NCBI GenBank assembly: GCA_964036045.1
Contig: OZ038378.1
Location: forward strand, 175,708,001-175,772,000
DNA: 64,000 nucleotides
Source of the DNA: Eutreptiella sp. 'Long Island Sound 2002'
Taxonomy: Eukaryota > Protista > Euglenida
Reading direction: 5' to 3'
Part shown: piece after piece, positions 24,192 through 38,498 of the stretch
Numbering within the stretch: the first letter of the stretch is position 1
Layout of the letters: each line of letters opens with the position of its first letter
Notes under the pieces: model-generated
Database searches by the model: none
What the model was told of the DNA's origin: nothing
What the model saw: the letters and a program-made list of their open reading frames with translations, nothing else
Program-made: the position numbers and the translations under genes

Positions 24192-27100
24192 ATGAAGCGG
24201 AGCATTCGTCGGTCTCTCGCTACATCCCTCTTCTTCTCGGTACGAAAAATCTGACCTCCCCTGCCTTCACAACGGTTTTCGAGAAAAGGCCCAACGTGTG
24301 TGCAGGCGCCATCCAAATTCGAAGGTCCCAAATACCTAGCTTTCAAGCAACTCGTCCAAGGTGTTCTCGAAGATGCGGACAAGAAGCTTGCGACGTCACC
24401 CATGTCACCTCATGAACGACGCGTGTTCGGGATCGTTTTGCCACGCCCAGACGCTCGTCAACTCACGATGCAACCAACCCTGCAGCCGTCGATAACGTCA
24501 ACCACAAATGCGTATTTGAGGGCCATGCAGACGTTCATCTCTAAAGAGGAGCAAGTGTGTTCCCCAAGCGCGCCCTCGTGGTGTGTGTGGGATGGTGGGG
24601 GGTAACCGTGCCTATTGACGAGACTGGTGCACACGAGTCTCAATCGTGCTGCCTCGTGCGCAAACACCGTCCTACACACGTCCTTTTTCATCATAGATGA
24701 AGGTATCGAGATCTATTGATGAGTTTCTCAAGCCTGGTGGCGAAGGTGAGACGTTGTCCAAGCACTACCTAGACAACGCCAACGACGGCACCTGGTTCGA
24801 TAGGTGCGTGCGCGCGCTGCTCAACCGCCCATCGAGCGCGCAAGGGCATCAATCCAATGTGCGTCGCATCGGCCCATTCGTCACCAAGAGGGTATCCGCG
24901 TTTGACGCGCGTGTGTAAGTCTGTGCCACACACGTGCCTAGGACCACAGAGTGTGTGATGCATCATGTTGCCGTCATCTTGCCCGAGACTACGCTAGTTG
25001 CGCGTTGCTGTGCATGTGTCTTTGCAGGATCAATCTCGATCGACAGCTGGAACAACGGCATTCGCTCTTCTTGAGCGGCAGCCCAGTGATCCTACTCAAC
25101 CCCGACCCTGTTGCGTCACGGAACACGCAGCTTGAAAGGGCTGCCAAGCTGTGCTCAGCCATGCTGAACGTCAAGGTGTCATCAGCCTATGCCCCACAAA
25201 TACGAGCCGGGGATTTCTCTCTTTCAACACGGGGGTAACCCTTCGGGGGCAGTTGGATTGTTCCGGCATCCTGTCAGAGATTTGCACACACCATGTGTGA
25301 TTCCCATTGCGATTGATAACACACAAGTGGTTAGCCTCCGTCATTTCTTGTCTCCATTGATGGTTTTAACCAGAACAGTTTATGCTGCTCGTTACTCGGC
25401 GGGTAAGTTACCTTCGACCTCGGGAGCCATGCAGCGTGCACGCGGTGGGCCCATCCTTGCTCCCAGGTGGCCGTGGATCACGCTGAAGGCCTCCCAGGCA
25501 AGCGCAATGAGCGAGTGCGTGGATTCCAATGCTCCCCGATGCTGTTCAATTGCACGCAGACCCCGGGCGTGGACAAGGACAGCCTGAGCATCCATCACCG
25601 CAGCGGCCATATCTCGGTGGCGTACAACGATTTGTGGTGGTATTTCACGGCCATGCACCAGCACGACGGCAAACCGCACAGCACGTGCGAGGTGTGCTTT
25701 AAGGGGGTGCTTACCACGCCAGTTCCGCCAGGTCACACTTTGTGCGAGTGCACCTGGAGCCATGGACTACTTGCATGAGCACAGAGTGCCGCTGCGTTCT
25801 GGACGCTGCCTGGGTCCGGGGTGCGGGCTCTTGGCATATGCGTGGGGCGCAGGGGGATCGAGTTCAACCAACGAACACGTCAGTGCCCCCCCCCCCCCCC
25901 CCCCTAAAGGAATGGCAGCTGCTGTTACGCCTGGGGGAGTCGAGACTGCATCGCTGTTTGCGCTCCTGTAGAGCCGCGGGGCACTCCGCCATGGCAGAGT
26001 GTTTGCGCTCCGCACTGAAGAGTGTTGCCACGTGGACCCATAATGCGTTGGTGCCGCGACCCGCCACCGATGGAGAAACGGAAACGGTGGGCCAACACAG
26101 CGGCTTGGTGGATCTTCGTCAGTGGCGAGATGTCGATTGACGCCGCCAACTGCCAGGAGAGCAGCAACAGCTCAGGGCTTTGTCCCAAGCCTCCCCCTTC
26201 CCTCCAAGACAGCCATTGTCTCACCACTCGCCCCAACGTCATTGACCTTTTGTGCAGAATGGACCCCACCAATACTACCAACATTAGTCCTCCTGCCGGA
26301 ATCGATGATTGTGCCCCAGCCCCCTTTGGACCCTTCAGAACGAAAAGGGAGGAAGTCCCCCGGCCCCCAGGGACTCAGACCCAGGGGGAGCAGAGTGGGA
26401 GCAGGGGTCCCTTGTCCAGCGTGTGAGGGAAAGGCTAAGGGCGGTTGGGCTGTGGGATTTCCCCCCCACGACCACTTCATGCGCGCCCCCATCGAAGAGG
26501 CGAAGGCAGGGAAAGAAGGGAAGGGGAGGGAGGCCCGAGGAAGGGCGGGTCGCTGACGCTCGTGCCCCGGAGGGCCATCAATACATCAGTTCCGTCGTCA
26601 TCACCATCTGGATCATCATCCTCCTCCTGATCTTTATCACGATCGTCTTCAGGCCCAGTTTGAAGTGATGAACCAGACGTACGGAAAGCCTGTGTTGGCC
26701 TTGCACTTTTCATAAGGAGGAGGGTCGCCCCTCCCCTTTTCAACCAGACACCAGCCCTCCTCCACCTCCTTTGAAGCGCCCACCCCGACCCCCCCCGCAG
26801 AATAAATCCATGGCGTTCATTTCCAGCAACGGACGTTTGGGTTTGTGTCTCTGCAGATCGAAGACACGCTGCTGGCCTTGACGCAGGCCACGTCGCCGTG
26901 GGCGAACCGCACCTTGAGCCAGCTCATCGGAGGGGACGAGTCGCCCCCTGAACCGAACTCCGATGGGTCCCCCATGCTGGAGCCCGCCGCCGCGGGGCCA
27001 GAGGCGGATCGTGAGGCCACGCGCAGTGCGGAGCCGCTGAGCCCGGACAGCAGCGACGGCCGGCCGGACGCCTTTGGTCGGAAGGAGGTCAGCGCGGGGA

Positions 27101-30100
27101 CGTGCCTCGCATTGATGAGCGGCGAAGACCCAAGTCCCGCGATCGGGTCGCTGACGTGGCTTGCCCGAGACAAATGGGCCAAGGTCCGGAATCAGATGCT
27201 GGAGTTCCCGACAACAGCGCGCAGCCTGGACCGCATCGAGTCCTCCATCTTCACGCTCGTCCTCAGCCCCGAGTCCCCCGAGCCCGGGTCGCTGGAGGCG
27301 ATGCGGGTCATCGCGCATGGGACGGGGCGAGACCGCTGGGGGGACAAGGCGCTGACGCTGGTGGTGTGCGCGAACGGCGTTGCGGGCCTCGCAGGGAACG
27401 CGCTGGCGTACGACTACCAGCAGCTGCATGCGCTGGCCACGCAGGTCTGGCACGCCTCGAACAACGATGAGTCTGTGGCGGCGGACCGAGCAGAACGTAT
27501 CGAGCGCAGAGAGCGGTGCTGTGGTGCTTTGCAGGGGCGGTCCGTTCGGGGGTTCGGTTTGGTTGTCCGACCGCCGAAATGCATATCACTGGGGATCTGG
27601 CGAAGATGGTTGCGTTGTTTTCCGAATGGGCCTTGTCTAGGCATAGAATCTTCGTCTGACCGTCGTTTTTGCTGATTTCGCGCGTTCTTCCGCAGGGGGG
27701 CAGGGTATACCATTCCGCAGCCGAAATGATCCCTCAAAATGGACCTTTCTACATGAACTCAACATTGCACTGGGACCCCTGGCGTCATGATATTTTGCCC
27801 CTTTTTGTGCGTTGAGTTTTGTGTTTGACCTCTGACATCAAGCTCCCCCAACAATGGAGCCCGGTCGACCACGCCCCCTGGGCAGGATTTTGAGGCCTGC
27901 TCTGGGGATGAACGTTCACTGGCATTTGACGCCCGTTCGGCAATACAAATTGAAGTCGTCGACCTTCGTCATATCTCGTGTTCGGTGTTCATGGATGAGG
28001 TGGAGCGCAGCCTGCAGATCCATTCGCCTTCAGCCGCTCTTCGTCCAACCAATGCGTTGGCCTGGGTGGCTTGTCCATTGGCACATTCAGCGCACCGGGC
28101 CTGCGAGGGAAACATCTTGAGATCGGGGGAGGGGGGGGGGGGGGCATCGGAGCAAGGCGCCTGCACCTGCATTCCTGGAACAAGTTGAGCTGTGCAAAGA
28201 TTGCGTCAACTCACAGGCATTCCAGGGCTGACGTAATGCTGTTGTGTGGCTGTGCGTGGCGCCGGGTGGATTTCCCATAAAATAAAGATAAGAAAAAATG
28301 TTTGCGCAAGTGCGGCCGGAGTAGCCCAGACCTGGCGGACCAGCCTCTGAGTTGCCTTTTTACTGTTGCTCCGACCGCGATGCAGCATGTCGGCTGGCAC
28401 CCTCTGCCCCAGCACCACAGGAAGAGTGAGTTCCTGCGTCACACTCCCGACAAACATGAAGGAAGCCGCGTGTTTTCGCCAGTAAGTCACCATCATGGGT
28501 CGCGGGCCCATTTGTGGGCAGCAGATACTTTTCATAGGACCTCCACAAGCCGTTCTCCCTGCGGAACAAACACGTCTCGAACGGTGGATCCTCCAGTAAT
28601 CTGCAGCAATCTCCAGAAACCTCCAGCAATTTTCCGCAACCCGCAAAAATCCTCAAAAACCTCCAGTGCAACCCCCAGCAATGTTCGGCAACCTCCGGTG
28701 CAACCCTCTGACGCCTGATTCCAGAGAAAAAATAAATTTCTGAGACTTTTTTTTCAATCAATTTTAATGCCACAAGTACCTCGAAACCCCCCCCCCCATT
28801 TCAAGGGTTGGAGGAAAATGGGTTGCATCACACTTCGAGGGCAATTTGGATCACATACAAATGAAACAACATACTAGGACATCGCGCGCATTCTTGTCTG
28901 CACCTACAAAAAAATTTTCCTCTTTACGCGCACGTGTTTGATGCTTCTCACCCGCACTTCCTCTCTAGAGTGCAGAGACAGAAAGAGCAAAAGAAGGAGG
29001 AGGAGAGGCGACGGGAGGAGGAGAGAAGACGGGAGGAAGAGAGGCGAGAGCGCGAAGCAGAGGCCGAGGTTGAGGCGCAGAAGGGCAAAAAGGGGGCGAA
29101 GGGCAAGCCTAGCAAGCCCCCAGCCCCGCCCAAGAAGGGTGACGGGCTGCTGCCGCCGGGCCGCACCAGCATCGTATCGGCAGTAAGCGCCTACCATGAC
29201 GGGCTGCAGATGTTCAATTCGCAGCAGTCCGTCGTCGAGGAGGAAATTGAGGTTGCTGTGCCCCGTGGTCTGCGTCTCGGAGTTCTTGTCCCGCGAATCC
29301 TCTTTCCCTCGCGAGCAAGCCCGCTTTGTCGCCGATTCCGCCAGACCTCGAGGATTCGGGTTGAGAACGAGAAAGAAAGCCCCAACGGGCATTGTCCGGT
29401 TGAAGGGGGAAGTATCGGTTGTTGTGTACTGATGAATGGCGAAACAGAGGCCAGTGACGAAACACCAGCTATCACCGGCGGCTGAATGGCGAAACAACGA
29501 CAGATCCTCACTGAGCTCCAAGAGGCGCAGCATTGCAAGCTGGTAAAACAAGCGGTGGAGTAGCGAAGTGACGGTCATGGTTTTTCCGGGACGCAGGTTA
29601 CTTTATTCTCGGGCCCCATGTCTAAGGACAGCCTGAACCGCACGCGGTCGGCGCGCTCAACAAGCGCCCTTCTGGATTTTCCATCCCGCACGCAGTCCTT
29701 TTGCTGCTGCGCATTCTCTTGTGATGCTGCAATCTGCACCTGCATGTTTTTGCGCTGCGGCAATCCCCCGCTCCATCCCTCTGAAGAGGTGACACCTAAA
29801 GGGGGGTGGAGGGGGCGGGCCCACGCCTCCTCAGCGGTAAGTTGCAGTCAACCGGCAACAGTTGGTGGTCAACCGACACCTGCAGTATCACAAGAGCATG
29901 TGCACACAGACTACAGAAGAGGGCACATAGCGCAAGAGCTGGGTGTCCCTCCTGACGCAAGGCTGCAACAACAGGCCCGAGGACTGCAGCGCTCTGATGC
30001 ATAGCCCCCCTCCCTCACCTGTGCCCTTGTGCTTTCCAACCCCCTTCGGTGAGTAGTGAGCACCCACTGAACCTCACGGCTGGTTTGGGATGCATGTGAG

Positions 30101-33100
30101 GCCCGCGCCGGGAGGAAAGTGGACGCCGTGGGGGACAGAGCGCGCGGATGCAAGCAGTGGCACCAGGAGGCACATGGAGTACCCTTTTGTGACATTTTGA
30201 GCCAAATGGGTGAGTGCTGAGGGCCCTGGAGAAGCACGTCGATGTCGCTTTGCCTTGCGGACTGGTCAGGAAGCGGTGCGGAGATTTGCGTACGCAGGGG
30301 TGCGCGCAGCGGAACACATGGTACAACGAGGCACAGAGGGGAGGGCAACACCGCACGGGGCCCCTGGCATGGGCTTCCTTGCGACCAGCCCCCTTGCTGC
30401 ATCACCGAGGAGTTGGAAGAGCGGTCTTGCGAGGGCTTGGCTTGGGTTGGAATGCTTTAGGTTTTGGTATTTTGCACCCGTCAATGAAAAGGTGGAAGTA
30501 CGGTATCCTGCTGCGGCTCGGATTGGTCCCTGCCCTTGTTCGCAACGTCAGATAGGCTTGTCTCTCACCCGCCACCACAGTTTTCTTCAACTGCATTTCA
30601 TCCGCCGCCAATGCTTCACATAACCATACTGCAATAGGAGTTCAAACCCGAGTTCGGGACTTTGGAGTGGGACCTGTCGCTTGAAGTGCGCCAGGCTATC
30701 GCAGGGGCGCAACGCTCCTGCGACCGCTTGTTCTTGAAGGGCGAGGCTGACGAGATCAGTCTGGATCTCGGGGAGCGGCAGCTGCGCGCAGCGCAGGTCA
30801 TCCCGGCTGCAATCATGCAGTTGGCGGTATGTGTTGTGTGTTGTGTTGACGGCGGGTGTTTGTGTGGCTGTGGCTCCGTATTCCTGAGTGCTAATTGCCC
30901 AAATGCAGTGCCACATAACCAGTCTTGCTGCTGGCTCCACTGACCCAGCCAATGTGGATGGACTCCCCGTGGTACGCCAGCGGGAGAGCTGTTGTTGCCA
31001 AAGCAACCAAACTTGGACGGAAACACACATTTTCTGGTCCAAGTGTCAAGCCATTATGCCCCATTTAGCGGTTTTTTTTTTTGCGTGCTTGTATTTCCTA
31101 ACAGTTACAATTTTGCACGTGACATTTACACTGCTGCACACCTGCAGCATGCGGAGAGCATTCTCATGGACGTCGAACATGCTACTTTCACACATTTGCC
31201 ACCCTGTCAATGGTACGCAGTCATTTTGGGCTGTGATTTTGAGGTGGGGGGGGGCTGGGGGGCTAAATCCAGGTATGTGGGTAACCTTGAAATATACCTT
31301 GGGGGGTGCAGGACACACCATTCGCACACGGTGTGTGGGGATGTGCATAAGTTCCTGGTCCCTATTGTTTGACTTCGGCGCTGTCCTATGAGGTTCCTTT
31401 TAAACAATAGCTCTCAGGGACGGTTGCAATTATGCCAACACGGTGGGTTTTCAGGGGTCGCTGCCATTGTTGCCTCATTTGTGCCCACTGAGTGTCCCGT
31501 AGGGGTGGGTATAAGGGGTATATTCCGAAAGCCCTTGAAAAGGGGTATTTGGAACACCCCAGCTCTGCATGCTGTACTGACGATATGTTTGAGATTTTCA
31601 TCCGTTTTGGACGGTGCCTGTGTTTCTTGCTGCCTCTTTTGTCAGTAGCTACCATGTCCACATACAAATTCACGCCTCGTGCTGTTGCCACCCCCCATGC
31701 ACCAAAAAACCTTTGGTTCGCAAAAGGGCACGCTTTGGGGGTGTAAAGTGGGTGCAACCGACTCGGAACAAGCCTGGTAGCCGCGCTAAAAGGCCTCATG
31801 CTGCCATTTCGAAGCAACCTGCATGTACCCACAAGGAGCACCAAATTCTGTCTACTGCTGAGGCCACCGCTTTTGCAGCCCAGTTTTTGGTTTGTAAAGT
31901 GCACCCAACGAAGGGTTCACAGCAGGAGTTTCTGGCCACATGCATTGGCATTGATTTGGAGAAGCATGTCAAGCATGCACAGTGGCACAAATAAACTAGA
32001 AAGAGGGGGCATCAGACAACTTATTTCTTATCGTACCATATCTGGACCACCAGCAGACCCCTGTTTTGATCGGAGATGACACAATAAAATGGTTGGATTT
32101 CGGTATGACACCTGATCCTCAGAGCCCTCAGCCCCATCCTGGCTTTGTCTGGGTGAATCAGGGTACAGTGCATGGCGCAAGGTCCGGGTCACCAAACAGC
32201 GAAATGTGGACGTCACAACTGGCGGCCTGTGGGCCCTGCCTCTCAATACAGGGTGGGTGCCTGTGAAGGCACGCAGGCTGCAAGATTGGGAGCACGGGGG
32301 CTGGCCCTGGCCGGGACCCGACCCCAAAGGGAGGGGGGGGGGACCCCCCCCCCCTCTACGGACCCCAAAATTGTCGTACGGAACAATGTGCTTTGTCGGC
32401 GCCAGAGGCGCCGGAGTTTTTGTTTTAGGCATAGGGCAGGGGGAAATTTTTTTGTTCGACCCTATGTGTCTGCACTCAAAATACTCAGAATTTCGTGGAG
32501 AATTCAAAAATGGCTAAAAAGCACAAAAAAGGATTTTGACCCCGACCCGGCCTCCGGGTCGGACCTTGGCTGATGGGAGCCTGAGTTGATGGGCAAATTT
32601 TTTTTGAAAAAAATTTTTACCTCACATGTGCATATTCAAAATGATCAGCGTGTCATGGGGATCATTTTGAGGTATGTATGTTGGGGTACCCACCGACCCC
32701 CCCCGGGGGGCCCGGCGGCTGACCGCCCGACCCGCCGACCCCCAAGGTTTGGGTCAACCAAGGGGGGGGGAGGGGTCCCCCCCCCCCCCCCCCTACAGCC
32801 CCCCAAACTGTCGAACACCCCTCGGGGTCACACATTGGCTGGCGCCAGCCCCCGTGATTGGGAGAAATTGGACAAATATGTTCCCATTCACAAGCCCAGC
32901 GATGTGTGCTCCAATGAGGTCCCAGCCCTTGTGGAGGGGGACCACAATGGCAGCGATTCGCATTCGGAATAATCAGTGGGCCCCTGTCCATTGCTCCGTC
33001 CCATGCGTTGTCAAATTTCCAGCTCTGTGCTCAAAAATGTGAACACCTACCCCCCCCCCCCCACCACCAAGGCCTTGTGCCAACCCCCTCCCCCCCCCCC

Positions 33101-36100
33101 CCCCCAAACCCATACGTTTCTGAAACGGCCTTTCTCACAGATTTCAAAAAGTATCCCCCCCCCCAAGGGAACGACATTTTGGCGCATAGGACTAATGGTT
33201 CAAAAAACCCAGGAAAAGTGCCAAAACCCACCGAGTTGGCACATTATGAATGTCTCCGAGAGATATTTGAGTGCAGGGCAATTGTTCTGCAACCAGGAAG
33301 GTTTTGGTGCTTCATGCATTCGAATTCCATGCATGCTATTCCTATGCAACCATTGATTTCTCCACACTTATGGAAATCCCGGGATGGCGGATGTTATGTT
33401 GCCATATTGATTCCTGTCTGCTTATGGGTACCCTGAGCTGGCAGGGCATATGTTACGCGAGACCATTCCGGTCTTGTTGCGCATGGAGGAGTTTGTATCT
33501 GCCTTATCGCCCATGGCCACACGTCCCTGAGGGATGTTGGGCCATACCCGGTGGATAGTGTCCGTCTTTGCAAGGCGTTGGGCTGGCACACCTGATGCCC
33601 TTTTCCCCGCCCACCTGCACCAACACCCCAAAGGGGAATGGGGCACGGTGCGCGCAACTTGCGCACCGTTTGGGGCAACTACACGGCATTTGACCTCAGG
33701 TTCACCCTCACAGAAAAGCCCGGGACAGCACCATGGGCACAAGGTAACGACAAGGAAATGTCATCTAATCATGTTCTGAGAGTCTAAGCCACCAGTCTGC
33801 ATGCTTTGACTCCTCCGCGACCGCAGGTGCAGATGGCGTACTACAAAGTGCATAGTGCACCCTGTGTCGTCATGGAAGCCGTGAAGATGTTCCGGCAGGG
33901 TTCGATCCAGCACGTCCCCACGGTGACCCACCTGTCCACCAGTTTCTGCCGCGCCGCGTGTGGCATGGCCCGCCATGAGCACAGCCTCCAGGACATGAAC
34001 TCGCTGCTGGGCAATGCGGCCACGCAGCTCGCCCACGTGCTGCAGACTGCAGAGCGGTCGTTGTCGTGGTCCAGCCACCTGATGGCGTTGAATCAACTGT
34101 CCCAGGTCCTTGCCCTAGTGTCCCCGGTGCTCGTTTGCTGTCTGCGGTCTGGTTCACGTGCTGTGCTGCGCTCTTCCTTGAACCCATCAGTATCAAGGTT
34201 GTGCATCCGAATCACATACACACACGCCGAGGCATCCTCTGCAGGAGCGGGGGGGGGTCCTTCGTCAGGGAACAAGGTCGTGGGGAAAACTTAATTTTTC
34301 AGTTTGGTGTCGAAATTTTCCCCACGACAATTTGCGCAATTTGGGGCATTTCCTGCTCTTTGTGGATCCTCCGTGGCGGCGGTGGTCAGGTATTGTCGCG
34401 TTGTTGTGGGCAGTCAGTCTGTTTGTCACATCCGTTGCTTGGGAGTGAGAAGTTGCTCTTTGTTAATCTCTGATGAGTTGGTGTTGTTCAAATTTTGGGC
34501 CTGCCAAGTTGCACACAACTGATTGTCCACAAGGAACCGAGGGTTGGGGGTGTTGAAGTTTCCCGCGTCTGGTGGCCCTGCACCAAAATTGGAGGTGTGT
34601 CGAAATTTTCCCCTCACAAAGTCTTCCCCGCCGACATTGTCCCCAGACGAACCCCCCCCCCCCCCCCCCCGTGTATGTATGCCCTGTGCCCTTTGTATGC
34701 CATTTGTATGCCCCGAGGCATGCAAAGCCCGATTATGCCAACAAGAACCTCTGTCACGGGGGTGAAACTACCTCATGCCAACAGCAAGCCCTGTCACACC
34801 AACGACCGAGGGTAGGTTTTGGATGCACATGGCTTACAGAGGGCATGCACAGGGCACAGACAGACTCAGGGCACGACACGCACAGGGCATCCTGAGCTGC
34901 ACAGAAGTTGCACAGGGCATACAAACGGCATACAAAATAGACACCGGGCATGGAGAGGGCATGCAAAGGGCGCACACAAAGAACACACAGGGTCCACACA
35001 GGTCGTAGCTGCAACGCACCCGCCACGCACAGGGCCATGTCTGCGGCCCCCTGCGGATGCACGGAGTCGGTATACACTTTTCCAGGTCTTGACCTTCCGC
35101 GTGGCCACACAGCGTCAGGTGAAGGAGTGGTGGGCGCGTGACCACGACCAGGCAGAGGCCCGCAAAGAGGCCCGCGTCATGGCCCGGGCCAGGCAGGCAG
35201 AGCTGCTAAGGCAGCAGGAGGAAGAGCGCTTACGGGAGCTGGAGGCCGCGGCCGCGGCCAATCAAAAGGGGAAGGCCGCGAAGGGTAAGGCGCCCGACAA
35301 AGGCAAGAAAAACTCCCTTCGAGAGAATTCCTTTCAAGAGAAGAGCGTTGCCGCAGCGGCGGCGGCGCAGGCGGCAGCCGCGGAGATTGCTGATGTGCTG
35401 GCGGGCATCCCGCCCCCGAGGTATTCACGAGGGACCCGCGCCCCCCGGCCCAGGGATGCATCGACAGGGGCGCAATGTGCAGGGGGGACGACATCCCCCC
35501 GCAGAATTCCACTCCAGACCACGAGGGGGCGCACGTGATACCGCCAACTGCCAGACCCCCAACCGGTTTTGCAATTGTTTGAAGAAAAGGAGGGCTCCCG
35601 CTCGGGTCAAGGCGCCCCCCCCCCGCCCCTTTTGTGGTTCCAACAAAATTCCTTTTGGGGAAAATCAAATGTTGTAAATGAGAAATTTTTGGCCACAGGG
35701 CCTCAGGCTCTCGCCCTGCCCCGTTTCCACATTAAGCGTTTGGACAGCATTCATCAAAGAGCGGCTGCAGCCTGCAGTCGGGGCTTTTCCAAAGCACACG
35801 TACGCAGATGAAGCAGAGCTTGGCCTGCCGGTGGCCGCGAACGACCACCGGCACCTTCTTGTTTGCACGGAACAGCAGAGGAAAGAGCTGAAGAGGCCAC
35901 ACAGGCCCTGGCATAGTTTTTGGCAGTGATATACACGTGTGCTGCCGTCCTGTTTCTACGGACACTTAAGATCATGCCGATGACAACATGAACAGTTCTT
36001 CAGGGCAGCATACTTCAGTGGCTCAAGATGGAGCGCCCTGATTGGATGGCCATAAAAGCTGAAGGGCGGGGGCCAGGGAGGACCAAGGGCAAGGCGCAGG

Positions 36101-38498
36101 ACAAAGAACTCGCCGCTACCCCAGTCGTACAACAGGCACCCGTCAGGAATGCTGTGCCAAGACACTGGGATGCGGAGTTGTGTGCATGAGGGTGTGGGTT
36201 GCGACACCACGGCAAGGAAAGGAAGGTGAGGCGATTGCCCTTTGGTGTTGGGTGCTTTTGTACCATTTTGATCACACCGTCTGCCTGCCCAACCCTGCCC
36301 CACCCAAAGACCCTGAGGTTCTTCAGTTGTAGAATCCATGGTGAAGGAGGAGGGTGGGAATTAGGACCATGGGGCCTGGGATGGGGATGGACGGGGCAGG
36401 TCACAGGTTTGTTTTGGTCAGGCATTCTGACCCTGTGCTTCACTCGTGACTCGGACAGGGGGTCACAAAAAGGCATTCGCATATTTGTAGATGCAACACT
36501 ATCTCAAAATGACCACCTGTCGTCTTGTTGTTTTATGAATGAGACATCTCGGGCTCTCTCCCGGGACTTCAAAGTCTTTCCTCAGGTGCCCAGCGGGTTC
36601 AACCCCCCCACTTCCCCTGCTCCACGGGTGCAGCGGTGGGGGGGAGGTTTGCAGAGGTTCCCCGCCCCCCTGCACCACGAGCCTTTGTGGGAGAGGGGGG
36701 GGGAGGTCAGATATGCCCTGCCCTCGTGGAAAACACGTATTGCTCGCGGCACGACCCGCATCTGTGAAGAGCACAGTCTTCCGCACTCATGCAGTGGGCA
36801 TTGTAGCCCTGCCAGGCCCAGCAGGGAATGGACACGTGACCAAATGCTGCAATGCACGCGTACGCACGCACGCACGCACGCACCGAAGACAACCCGTTTG
36901 ACTCAATTCGTTTTCCCGATGAGTCTGGGAAGGGGGTTCAGTGTGTCTATCCCTTGGAGTATTGCAGCCCCATGGCTTGCCATTCAGCCTGCTTCCCAAC
37001 CAACTTGTGGTTTTCTCAGGTCGCCAATCCAGAGCTCCAAGCAAGCCCTGGGTGTTACACCCCCCGCGCTCTTTTCAGACTCCACGTACCAAATGCTGAC
37101 GTCCCCAATGCTCACGTGTTTCTCATGCCCGGCCACCCCAGCCATTGCAGCCATGTTCATGACACCCAAGCCTGTGAAGCAGGCCATGACCGTCACTTAC
37201 AGTGTTGATGCCCGGTCCCTGAAGTTCGGCCTGTTTGCGCTGGGGTTGGGCCGTGGAGAGGTATGCCTGGAGCAGTGATGTACCTTCAATGTCCTGCACC
37301 CCTTTGTTGTCCCGCAACTGCTAAAGGACTCAGCAGGGACCTGCCTGACTGTGAAGTAGAACAGACAGTTGGCCAGGAACGGTCTGACAAGCCGACGTGG
37401 GACAGCCACGGCGGTGAGGAATGTGTTTTCAGGCGCGCGATGTTTTGAGGTTTCCGTCGCGACCAGACTTCGGCAACGCTCCGTCATCTCCCGCCTCATT
37501 GTTCGCGTTGGCGCCGCTCCCTTTTCGATGTTGTTGGTTGCTCGTGTGCCCCCTCGTGATGCCAATGGGCGTGAGTTTTGGTTTGATCGTACCAACCGAC
37601 AACCGACAACCAATCACCGAAATCACGTGGCCAACCATTGAGCGTCTCTTCTTGCGGTCCTGTCGGCCAATGGGCCAGAGGTTGCATTTTCCCCTGCAGT
37701 GCCAACGTGCAGCATCCCGTTCCCATGATCTCCTGCCCCCTAACAGGGCTCCTTTTAACAACTCGGCACCACTGGGGGATGGAGGTGGAGTGGGGGGGGT
37801 CCCACACCACCCACCCACCCACCCACCCCGCCTTTAGAAGATTGGGCCAAATTTTCTTCCGGGCCTTCGACCAATCAAAAGTTTTCTTCGGCGCCTTCGG
37901 CGCCTCTAAAAACTCAGCACCGCTGGGGGGAGGGGGGAGGGGGGAGAGGGGGAGAGGGGGACCACTGGGCTCCGCGAACGCGGAAACGACACCAGCAGGA
38001 GCACCGGCCGCAGCGGCCAACAGAAAGCAGCAACCCGACGCAACATGCGGAGGGAAGAACGGGTGACTGTCCAGGGCCCCGTAAAGAAACAACAACCAGA
38101 CGGAATGTCACATAGGGGGCTGACCCCCCCCCCCCCCCTAGACCCACCCACGCACCGCCCCGCCTTGAAAGGGGCCCTACCCCTAAGCCTTTCCCTGTCG
38201 CACCCTTGCCATCCCCCTCCCGTTCACACAGCTCAAGGCGTTCTCCCGGGCGCTGCATGAGTCTCTCAACACGATTTACTACGAGTACATCACCCGGGGC
38301 GCACCCACGAGCAAGTGCGTCGCCACTGACACCCATGGCCGACGCGGGCTGGTCATCAAGAAGCCGCCGGCACGTCCATTTTCCAGCCCCGTGTCCCTGC
38401 AGGCTTTGTCGATGGGGGGGTCGCCTCCACTGCCCCCCGTGCCCCTGTCAGCCAGAAGTCCCAGCGGATCTCCTGATCACAGGGGTCTTACTTTCTGA
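24192..38498 (+). CDS. Choline/carnitine O-acyltransferase-fold protein, probable pseudoenzyme with charged inserts (multi-exon, ~1,050-1,150 aa)
   Basis: Hand-built GT-AG exons: 24192-24239, 24306-24554, 24697-24803, 25028-25175, 25467-25691, 26857-27444, 27886-28065(?), 28976-29251, 29597-29646(?), unresolved gap, 30638-30826, 33827-34105, 35086-35420, 37020-37260, 38232-38498. Family landmarks occur in the correct order: TTNAYLRAM, QLERAAKL, LFNCTQTPG, DKWAKVR, SLDRIESSIF, DRWGDK, LEWDL, IMQLA-VQMAYYK, PALFSD, AFSRALHESL. Confidence 0.85.
24306..25691 (+). CDS. Acyltransferase-fold gene, N-terminal exons 2-5
   Basis: Phase-consistent exons give AYLRAMQTFISKEEQ|MKVSRSIDEFLKPGGEGETLSKHYL...R|INLDRQL...TQLERAAKLCSAMLNVK|VAVD...PMLFNCTQTPGVDKDSL...HISV. 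Confidence 0.85.
26857..27444 (+). CDS. Acyltransferase-fold gene, catalytic-site exon (His replaced)
   Basis: ctgcag acceptor; encodes RDRWGDKALTLVVCANGVAGLAGNALAYD. This aligns to the family pattern NRWFDK...NGxxGxxxEHSxxDG. Confidence 0.88.
28976..29251 (+). CDS. Acyltransferase-fold gene, charged coiled-coil insert exon 1
   Basis: RQKEQKKEEERRREEERRREEERREREAEAEVEAQKGKKGAKGKP..., flanked by AG and GT. The exact acceptor (28969 or 28976) is uncertain. Confidence 0.65.
30638..30826 (+). CDS. Acyltransferase-fold gene exon
   Basis: caatag|EFKPEFGTLEWDLSLEVRQAIAGA...IPAAIMQLA|gtatgt matches the family segment PxxLxW...SPDxxxQxAxQLA. Confidence 0.85.
33827..34105 (+). CDS. Acyltransferase-fold gene exon
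   Basis: ccgcag|VQMAYYKVHSAPCVVMEAVKMFRQGSIQHV...SLSWSSHLMAL, equivalent to QLAYY...YESxxxRxFxxGRTE...GxGxDRHL. Confidence 0.88.
34679..35040. repeat. Intronic inverted CACAGGGCA/GCATACAAA arrays
   Basis: 34692-34713 is the reverse complement (21/22) of 34915-34936. Several cacagggca units lie at 34841-35040. Confidence 0.75.
35086..35420 (+). CDS. Acyltransferase-fold gene, charged coiled-coil insert exon 2
   Basis: ttccag|VLTFRVATQRQVKEWW...RQQEEERLRELEAAAAANQKGKAAKGKAPDKGKK...IPPPR|gtattc. Confidence 0.75.
37020..38498 (+). CDS. Acyltransferase-fold gene, last two exons (37020-37260, 38232-38498)
   Basis: PALFSDSTYQMLTSPMLTCFS...VTYSVDARSLKFGL|LKAFSRALHESLNTIY...GLTF*. Splice phases are consistent. 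Confidence 0.82.

Follow-up and report, generated by a model that had tools for sequence, protein, structure and literature searches.

We analysed a 64-kb stretch of DNA (contig OZ038378.1, positions 175,708,001 to 175,772,000; hereafter the window) that holds, on its + strand, a gene for a member of the carnitine/choline acyltransferase family whose active-site residues are replaced. Joining collinear stop-free segments at GT..AG sites gave a gene model that spans positions 24192-38498 of the window, with 12 exons amounting to 3,030 nucleotides (nt), an ATG at 24192 and a TGA at 38496-38498. An earlier note on this DNA, made from its letters alone, had reported the same ends together with an intact frame and clean splice sites. 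This description holds, as the 1,009 codons contain no internal stop and all 11 introns are bounded by GT..AG, after small shifts at repeated bases for those introns that are seen in RNA. Among the other long open reading frames (ORFs) of the window no conserved gene was found.

Membership of the encoded protein in the family is indicated by its profile matches. Specifically, the Carn_acyltransf profile (PF00755) matches the translations of four exons in collinear order, at profile positions 71-116, 211-331 (E = 1.6e-21), 347-403 and 403-495, with exon 6 scoring 77 bits and exon 9 scoring 33.4 bits against a family cut-off of 22.3. An exhaustive HMMER search with exon 6 over 1.84 billion representative proteins returned two strong matches only, one being a 276-residue genomic ORF of this locus (P0001) and the other a 912-residue protein of Euglena longa (P0002, E = 8e-39; GGOE01053583.1.p1, EukProt EP00668_P040695). 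The remaining matches have E values above 1e-15 and are confined to the half of exon 6 that is conserved, and the catalytic His is present in almost every one of them. A word search added a 956-residue protein of Euglena gracilis (P0151; EG_transcript_1861, EukProt EP00667_P001862), and word-index searches of a 5.8-billion-cluster collection yielded no further full-length relatives and no copy of the spliced window protein beyond P0001. Both Euglena proteins carry PF00755 and are unannotated beyond this domain.

The N-terminal half of the fold is encoded by exons 1 to 6. Exon 1 (24192..24239, residues 1-16) starts at the first ATG, ends at a GT donor with the frame open, and encodes the peptide MKRSIRRSLATSLFFS. 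Exon 2 (24306..24554, residues 17-99) begins the N domain; it is delimited by AG and GT sites and by its frame, and aligns to the LPxLPVP...YL region of the canonical and the Euglena proteins. Exon 3 (24697..24803, residues 100-135) is followed by exon 4 (25028..25175, residues 135-184), which has RNA joints on both sides and carries the profile match at 71-116, and by exon 5 (25467..25691, residues 185-259). The large exon 6 (26857..27515, residues 260-479) has RNA joints on both sides as well as RNA contigs inside it, gives the strongest profile match, and contains insertion A, the RW.DK and NGVAG strands and the motif NALAYDY.

Exon 7 (28969..29251, residues 479-573) is occupied by insertion B, a Glu/Arg-rich helix that is followed by a Lys/Gly/Pro-rich linker. 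The C domain starts in exon 8 (30638..30826, residues 574-636), which has RNA joints on both sides and encodes the former coenzyme A (CoA) site, and continues in exon 9 (33827..34105, residues 637-729), where the motifs MEA, GSIQ and SLSWSSHL are found and which is supported by the profile match at 403-495 (E = 2.6e-8) and by tblastn with both Euglena proteins. Exon 10 (35086..35420, residues 730-841) encodes insertion C, a long charged and Ala-rich helix plus linker, and is defined by its AG and GT sites, its frame and its alignment to the corresponding Euglena insertion. Note that this 335-nt exon is required because exon 11 runs into a stop if it is skipped. Exon 11 (37020..37260, residues 841-921) encodes TCF and MTPKP where canonical members have STS and GFGPV, respectively, and is delimited by AG and GT sites and frame; tblastn finds it with the E. 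gracilis (E = 1e-8) and E. longa (E = 1e-7) proteins. Finally, exon 12 (38232..38498, residues 922-1009 plus the stop) encodes the final helix of the fold and a tail rich in Pro and Ser, and is placed by its AG acceptor, its frame and a tblastn match to E. longa (E = 0.001).

Transcription of the gene is evident from four RNA libraries labelled as estuary metatranscriptomes, which hold 12-15% of the words sampled from a 10-kb stretch of which exons make up about 21%. We aligned RNA contigs to positions 24900-30899 (6,000 nt) and traced their loose ends beyond this stretch. Overall, the contigs of four runs show spliced RNA for six of the 11 introns with no mismatches. The joints inside the aligned stretch are 25175/25467 and 25691/26857 (three runs each), 27515/28969 and 29251/30638. 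Two further joints come from loose ends, namely 24803/25028, where the end before 25026 equals 24772-24801 and a 2-nt shift gives GT..AG, and 30826/33827, where the end equals the sequence from 33829 onward. Contigs of three runs reach exactly 444 nt upstream of 25026, which is 90 nt beyond exons 2 and 3, and these 90 extra nucleotides fit exon 1 plus a leader. The depth of the contigs is low (2-10). A protein-pattern scan and a search with an exact 36-mer of exon 11 gave no match in Joint Genome Institute (JGI) metagenome contigs. Unrelated and deeper RNA contigs (1.8 kb, depth 17-22, 1-3 mismatches) match positions 25882-26174 of intron 5, starting from a C19 run; they continue into other sequence on both sides, and the segment looks like a piece of an expressed repeat or transposon.

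The hallmark motifs of the family are replaced throughout the window protein, and every replacement that the earlier note had listed is present. The catalytic EHSxxDG reads NALAYDY (residues 440-446, positions 27397-27417), YES reads MEA (residues 652-654, 33872-33880), GRTE reads GSIQ (residues 661-664, 33899-33910), GxGxDRHL reads SLSWSSHL (residues 714-721, 34058-34081), and STS reads TCF (residues 873-875, 37114-37122). The change of the catalytic His to Ala that the note had read from the letters is borne out by Ala441 (27400-27402), which stands opposite the catalytic His of mouse CrOT in a phmmer alignment and falls in the catalytic column of the profile; an alternative register, discussed below, gives Glu. 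A pairwise HMMER alignment of the E. gracilis relative to human CrAT (1nm8) likewise sets an Ala opposite His. Alignment to a profile built from 25 full-length canonical proteins shows that, in the window protein, the Glu-His pair has become Asn-Ala, the Tyr and Ser of YES have become Met and Ala, Arg-Thr-Glu in GRTE has become Ser-Ile-Gln, and the Arg of DRH has become Ser. The Tyr and Ser of YES, the Thr of GRTE, the Arg of DRH and the Ser of STS are what we take to be the carnitine/choline-site and transition-state residues of the CrAT structures, and their equivalents in the window protein are Met652 and Ala654, Ile663, Ser719 and Thr-Cys-Phe873-875, respectively. The Euglena proteins have Ser-Ala or Gly-Ala as the catalytic pair, and AQ, GLWQ, LQWP.HL and ITLY at the other erased motifs.

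The CoA site is altered as well. A review lists K419, K423, D430 and E453 of CrAT for this site (PMC11852590), and the window protein has Glu619 at the position of K419, Arg623 at that of K423 and Ala630 at that of D430. K419 is Glu in all three proteins, a reversal of charge, and D430, which 95 of 97 canonical members retain, has been exchanged for Ala, Val or Met in the three. The equivalent of E453, Glu653, is retained in the window protein alone among them. A broader view of these changes is given by the 97 alignment columns in which canonical members show 80% conservation or more. All three proteins keep 42 of these columns, mostly in structural motifs, with RW.DK, NG.AG, P..F.Q.A.Q.A and HL retained, and the other 55, altered in at least one of the three, include every known catalytic and substrate-site position. 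Loss of the catalytic His is rare elsewhere in the family, as the catalytic column of the 148 other members retrieved holds 138 His, eight gaps (at least seven of them in fragments) and two residues that are Gly or Arg. These two belong to unrelated family members, P0130 (570 residues, Arg) and P0109 (460 residues, Gly), and P0130 also has QY for the RH of DRH and STI for STS; both branch inside canonical groups, so that they may represent independent losses of activity.

A second feature of the window protein, and its most distinctive one, is a set of three insertions totalling about 350 residues, which the earlier note did not mention. All three are common to the window protein and both Euglena proteins. 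Insertion A is a disordered segment of about 70 residues (positions ~26890-27115, within exon 6). Insertion B, about 100 residues long and Glu/Arg-rich, follows the catalytic strand, and the exon that encodes it is 69% charged. Insertion C, charged and about 110-130 residues long, follows the DRHL helix. Insertions B and C map to separate exons (7 and 10) of the window gene. In the window protein, these two insertions close with similar Lys/Gly motifs, QKGKKGAKGK (29084-29113) and QKGKAAKGK (35263-35292), respectively. We considered whether B and C are duplicates of each other and rejected this, as BLASTP gave E = 49 and the likeness is limited to a short KGK.AKGK.

The fold was examined in an AlphaFold2 model of the E. 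gracilis relative, built from a 52-sequence alignment. The model has a mean predicted local distance difference test (pLDDT) score of 76, with most of the core above 90, and retains the two-domain fold of the family. Foldseek matches it in the PDB to rat CPT2, human and mouse CrAT, ChAT and CrOT with E values of 4e-30 to 3e-24, target-normalised template modelling (TM) scores of 0.76-0.84 and sequence identities of 12-16%. Insertions B and C open in this model with helices of 57 residues (448-504) and 65 residues (691-755) at pLDDT values of about 90-97, and each helix is followed by a disordered return linker.

A quick maximum-likelihood tree groups the three proteins with 100% support, and the stem that leads to this clade is 1.5 changes per site long. 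The tip of the window protein measures 0.55 changes per site versus a median tip of 0.73 in the same tree. This combination of a long stem with ordinary tips fits a single burst of change that accompanied the loss of activity and was followed by constrained evolution. Identity between the two Euglena proteins is 69-73% (73% in the core), and the window protein is equally distant from both, with 39% identity to either one in the core (~570 columns) and 27% in the insertions. This equal distance and the confinement of the matching RNA to estuary libraries fit a marine or estuarine euglenid. If the genome is that of Eutreptiella, the window gene would be the orthologue of EG_transcript_1861, and such orthology would make the lineage at least as old as the crown photosynthetic euglenids. 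In a genome of E. gracilis it would be an old paralogue, and this would likewise point to long retention.

As regards location, the exon 1 peptide, which is Arg-rich and contains no acidic residues, looks similar to a mitochondrial presequence. No conserved targeting signal is evident, however, since one Euglena relative has an acidic N-terminus and the other a short one. A scan of the window protein found no membrane-like segment; the highest 19-residue Kyte-Doolittle mean is 1.6 and lies on a core beta-strand, and the N-terminus has no hydrophobic segment. With neither a membrane anchor nor a conserved targeting signal, the protein is probably soluble.

Taken together, we think it likely that the window gene encodes a pseudoenzyme, that is, an expressed, intact and catalytically dead carnitine/choline acyltransferase that belongs to a small lineage, found to date solely in photosynthetic euglenids (this genome, E. 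gracilis and E. longa). The gene is intact and expressed, and it has been retained in E. gracilis and E. longa after the loss of the residues, as a pseudoenzyme would be; the general-base His, the carnitine/choline-site residues and the CoA-site residues that mark an active enzyme were not found. The central proposal of the earlier note, that the fold was repurposed, is supported by the spliced RNA, by the clade, by the fold retained in the model, and by the two Euglena relatives, which have the same losses and insertions. We envisage that an ancestor on the stem of this clade lost the acyl-transfer chemistry once, and that constraint then maintained the protein for a task other than catalysis. 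The rigid dead core would most likely be the platform of a scaffold or adaptor, with the two helices and the flexible linkers, rich in Lys and Pro, extending from it to binding partners. A role exerted through the surface, the added helices and the linkers is favoured over one exerted through a small-molecule pocket because both substrate sites have been dismantled and because their replacements differ between the window and the Euglena proteins. On balance we lean towards the view that this lineage-specific, motif-erased body with two exon-encoded helices of about 60 residues has a non-catalytic part to play as a structural element or adaptor, perhaps as a subunit or tether in a larger assembly, and that it goes back at least to the common ancestor of Euglena and this marine or estuarine euglenid. 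Of the two roles that the earlier note had suggested, the scaffold is thus the one we favour, whereas the acyl-CoA sensor fits poorly with the replacement of K419 and D430 in the CoA site.

Several points weigh against this interpretation. The loss of acyl-transfer activity is something we infer from residues, and the scaffold role and the use made of the helices are conjecture. The fold as modelled is that of the E. gracilis relative. Spliced RNA covers the joints from exon 3 to exon 9, and exons 10-12 are inferred; the joints between exons 1 and 2, 2 and 3, 9 and 10, 10 and 11, and 11 and 12 were placed by splice sites, reading frame and homology. In the portions examined of the plastid proteome (10.1101/573709), of the supplements of the genome paper (PMC6366073) and of the E. 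gracilis mitochondrial proteome (PMC7403612), EG_transcript_1861 does not occur; the last of these includes three CPT1 and one CPT2.

A further point concerns the alignment register around the catalytic His. In the alignment used for the model, MAFFT places a DHS motif of the two Euglena proteins, located 23 residues downstream, on the EHS of the canonical enzymes by way of a 23-residue insertion. Deleting these 23 residues raises the hidden Markov model (HMM) scores of the Euglena proteins by 10-15 bits, which is roughly the cost of such a gap, and the same deletion in the window protein lowers its score from 113.1 to 107.5 bits. Since Glu occupies the shifted position of the window protein (DES), neither register provides it with a His, whereas in the Euglena proteins a His might be in place. 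We rejected the shifted register for the window protein since the ungapped alignment scores better and since the HMMER pairwise alignments to CrOT and CrAT are ungapped. For the Euglena proteins the shifted register appears, as far as alignment scores go, about as good as the ungapped one, and in the E. gracilis model the former catalytic loop (residues 420-446) has pLDDT values below 50. The motif in question, N-x-D-(E/H)-S-V-A-(A/V)-D-R, occurs in all three proteins (window positions 27460-27486; E. gracilis residues 438-447; E. longa residues 395-404), directly before the long Glu/Arg helix, and its E/H position holds His in the two Euglena sequences and Glu in that of the window protein.

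The first alternative to a structural role is that the old tunnel of the dead core continues to accommodate a ligand, such as acyl-CoA, malonyl-CoA or acyl-carnitine, whose level the protein signals to its partners. Such a ligand sensor has a precedent within the family in CPT1C (PMC6927751), and it would be compatible with the fold and tunnel-forming scaffold that are retained in the E. gracilis model and with Arg623, whose positive charge matches that of K423 at the contact with the CoA phosphate. However, the changes at K419 and D430 noted above affect all three proteins, and the SPD motif is replaced along with Tyr452, the Arg and Thr of GRTE, the Arg of DRH and STS, in a manner that differs between the window and the Euglena proteins. 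The protein also has neither the N-terminal membrane helices of the CPT1 type nor their regulatory domain. We consequently regard a sensor as improbable.

A second alternative, which we hold to be a little less probable again, is that the protein is a new kind of enzyme in which other residues catalyse the same or another reaction, for example those of the D(H/E)SVA(A/V)DR motif or the Trp of LxWxxHL. Consistent with this idea, all three proteins share newly fixed positions, such as Gln141, Thr873, Pro890 and Trp717, and the DHS motif of the Euglena proteins can be aligned to EHS as just described. Yet the copy of this motif in the window protein has Glu and not His, the pairwise HMMER alignments run without a gap and set the canonical His opposite Ala, and the window protein scores 113 bits ungapped versus 107.5. 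Furthermore, the former active-site residues differ between the window and the Euglena proteins, unlike those of a conserved catalytic centre. Lastly, the low RNA depth and the missing protein-level trace in the examined parts of the proteome tables are what a transcribed but decaying or functionless relic might show, and this is very unlikely given 1,009 codons in 12 exons with no stop or frameshift and all splice sites intact, a core more conserved than the insertions, and two further species whose full-length relatives have complete ORFs and a core identity of 39%, so that the losses are old and the frame has been maintained since.

An additional observation on this DNA concerns homopolymers. 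The 64 kb of the window contain 66 runs of at least seven G or C, versus about eight expected from base composition, for example at 25886 (C19), 34652 (C19), 32777 (C17), 6529 (G17) and 50585 (C18). More than 20 of these G/C runs lie in the introns of the acyltransferase-like gene and just one short run lies in an exon (G7 at 38414). Such tracts seem to be characteristic of the non-coding DNA of this genome.

Carnitine/choline acyltransferases are textbook metabolic enzymes. The pseudoenzyme reading of the window gene would provide a clean natural case of the full conversion of an enzyme into a non-enzyme, retained in at least three euglenid species, and, if the adaptor role is true, it would be the first member of the family shown to be fully converted to a non-enzymatic role. 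It also offers pseudoenzyme research a testable case, as RNA interference and proteomics work in E. gracilis. A caution for annotators is that, when metabolism is reconstructed, euglenid matches to PF00755 must not be taken for enzymes of fatty-acid import.

The known systems closest to the window protein are the active members of its own family. It shares with CrAT, ChAT, CrOT and CPT2 the two-domain fold, as judged from the E. gracilis model, and the collinear Pfam match. It differs from CrAT in having Ala for the catalytic His343 and Asn for its Glu neighbour, and in the replacement of Y452 and S454, of the Arg, Thr and Glu of GRTE, of the Arg of DRH, of STS, and of K419 and D430. It is also longer, with 1,009 residues versus approximately 600-650 in the canonical enzymes.

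A functional parallel is CPT1C, the mammalian brain isoform that has been described as a pseudoenzyme and malonyl-CoA sensor (PMC5934389, PMC6927751). The earlier note had stated that no example of this architecture was known, and this stands insofar as our full-text literature searches turned up neither a paper on a family member with erased motifs nor one that mentions EG_transcript_1861, but not insofar as CPT1C, the only family member that these searches found described as a pseudoenzyme, already carries that label. CPT1C and the euglenid protein belong to the same family, and CPT1C is thought to work without meaningful acyl transfer. CPT1C keeps the catalytic motifs and the N-terminal membrane anchor of CPT1. 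In contrast, the euglenid protein has its motifs erased, has no hydrophobic anchor, contains helical insertions, and falls in a separate clade. The proteins most like it are EG_transcript_1861 and its E. longa counterpart, which share its clade, its active-site losses and its three insertions, and which differ from it in having acidic or short N-termini versus an Arg-rich one and DHS versus the DES of the window protein.

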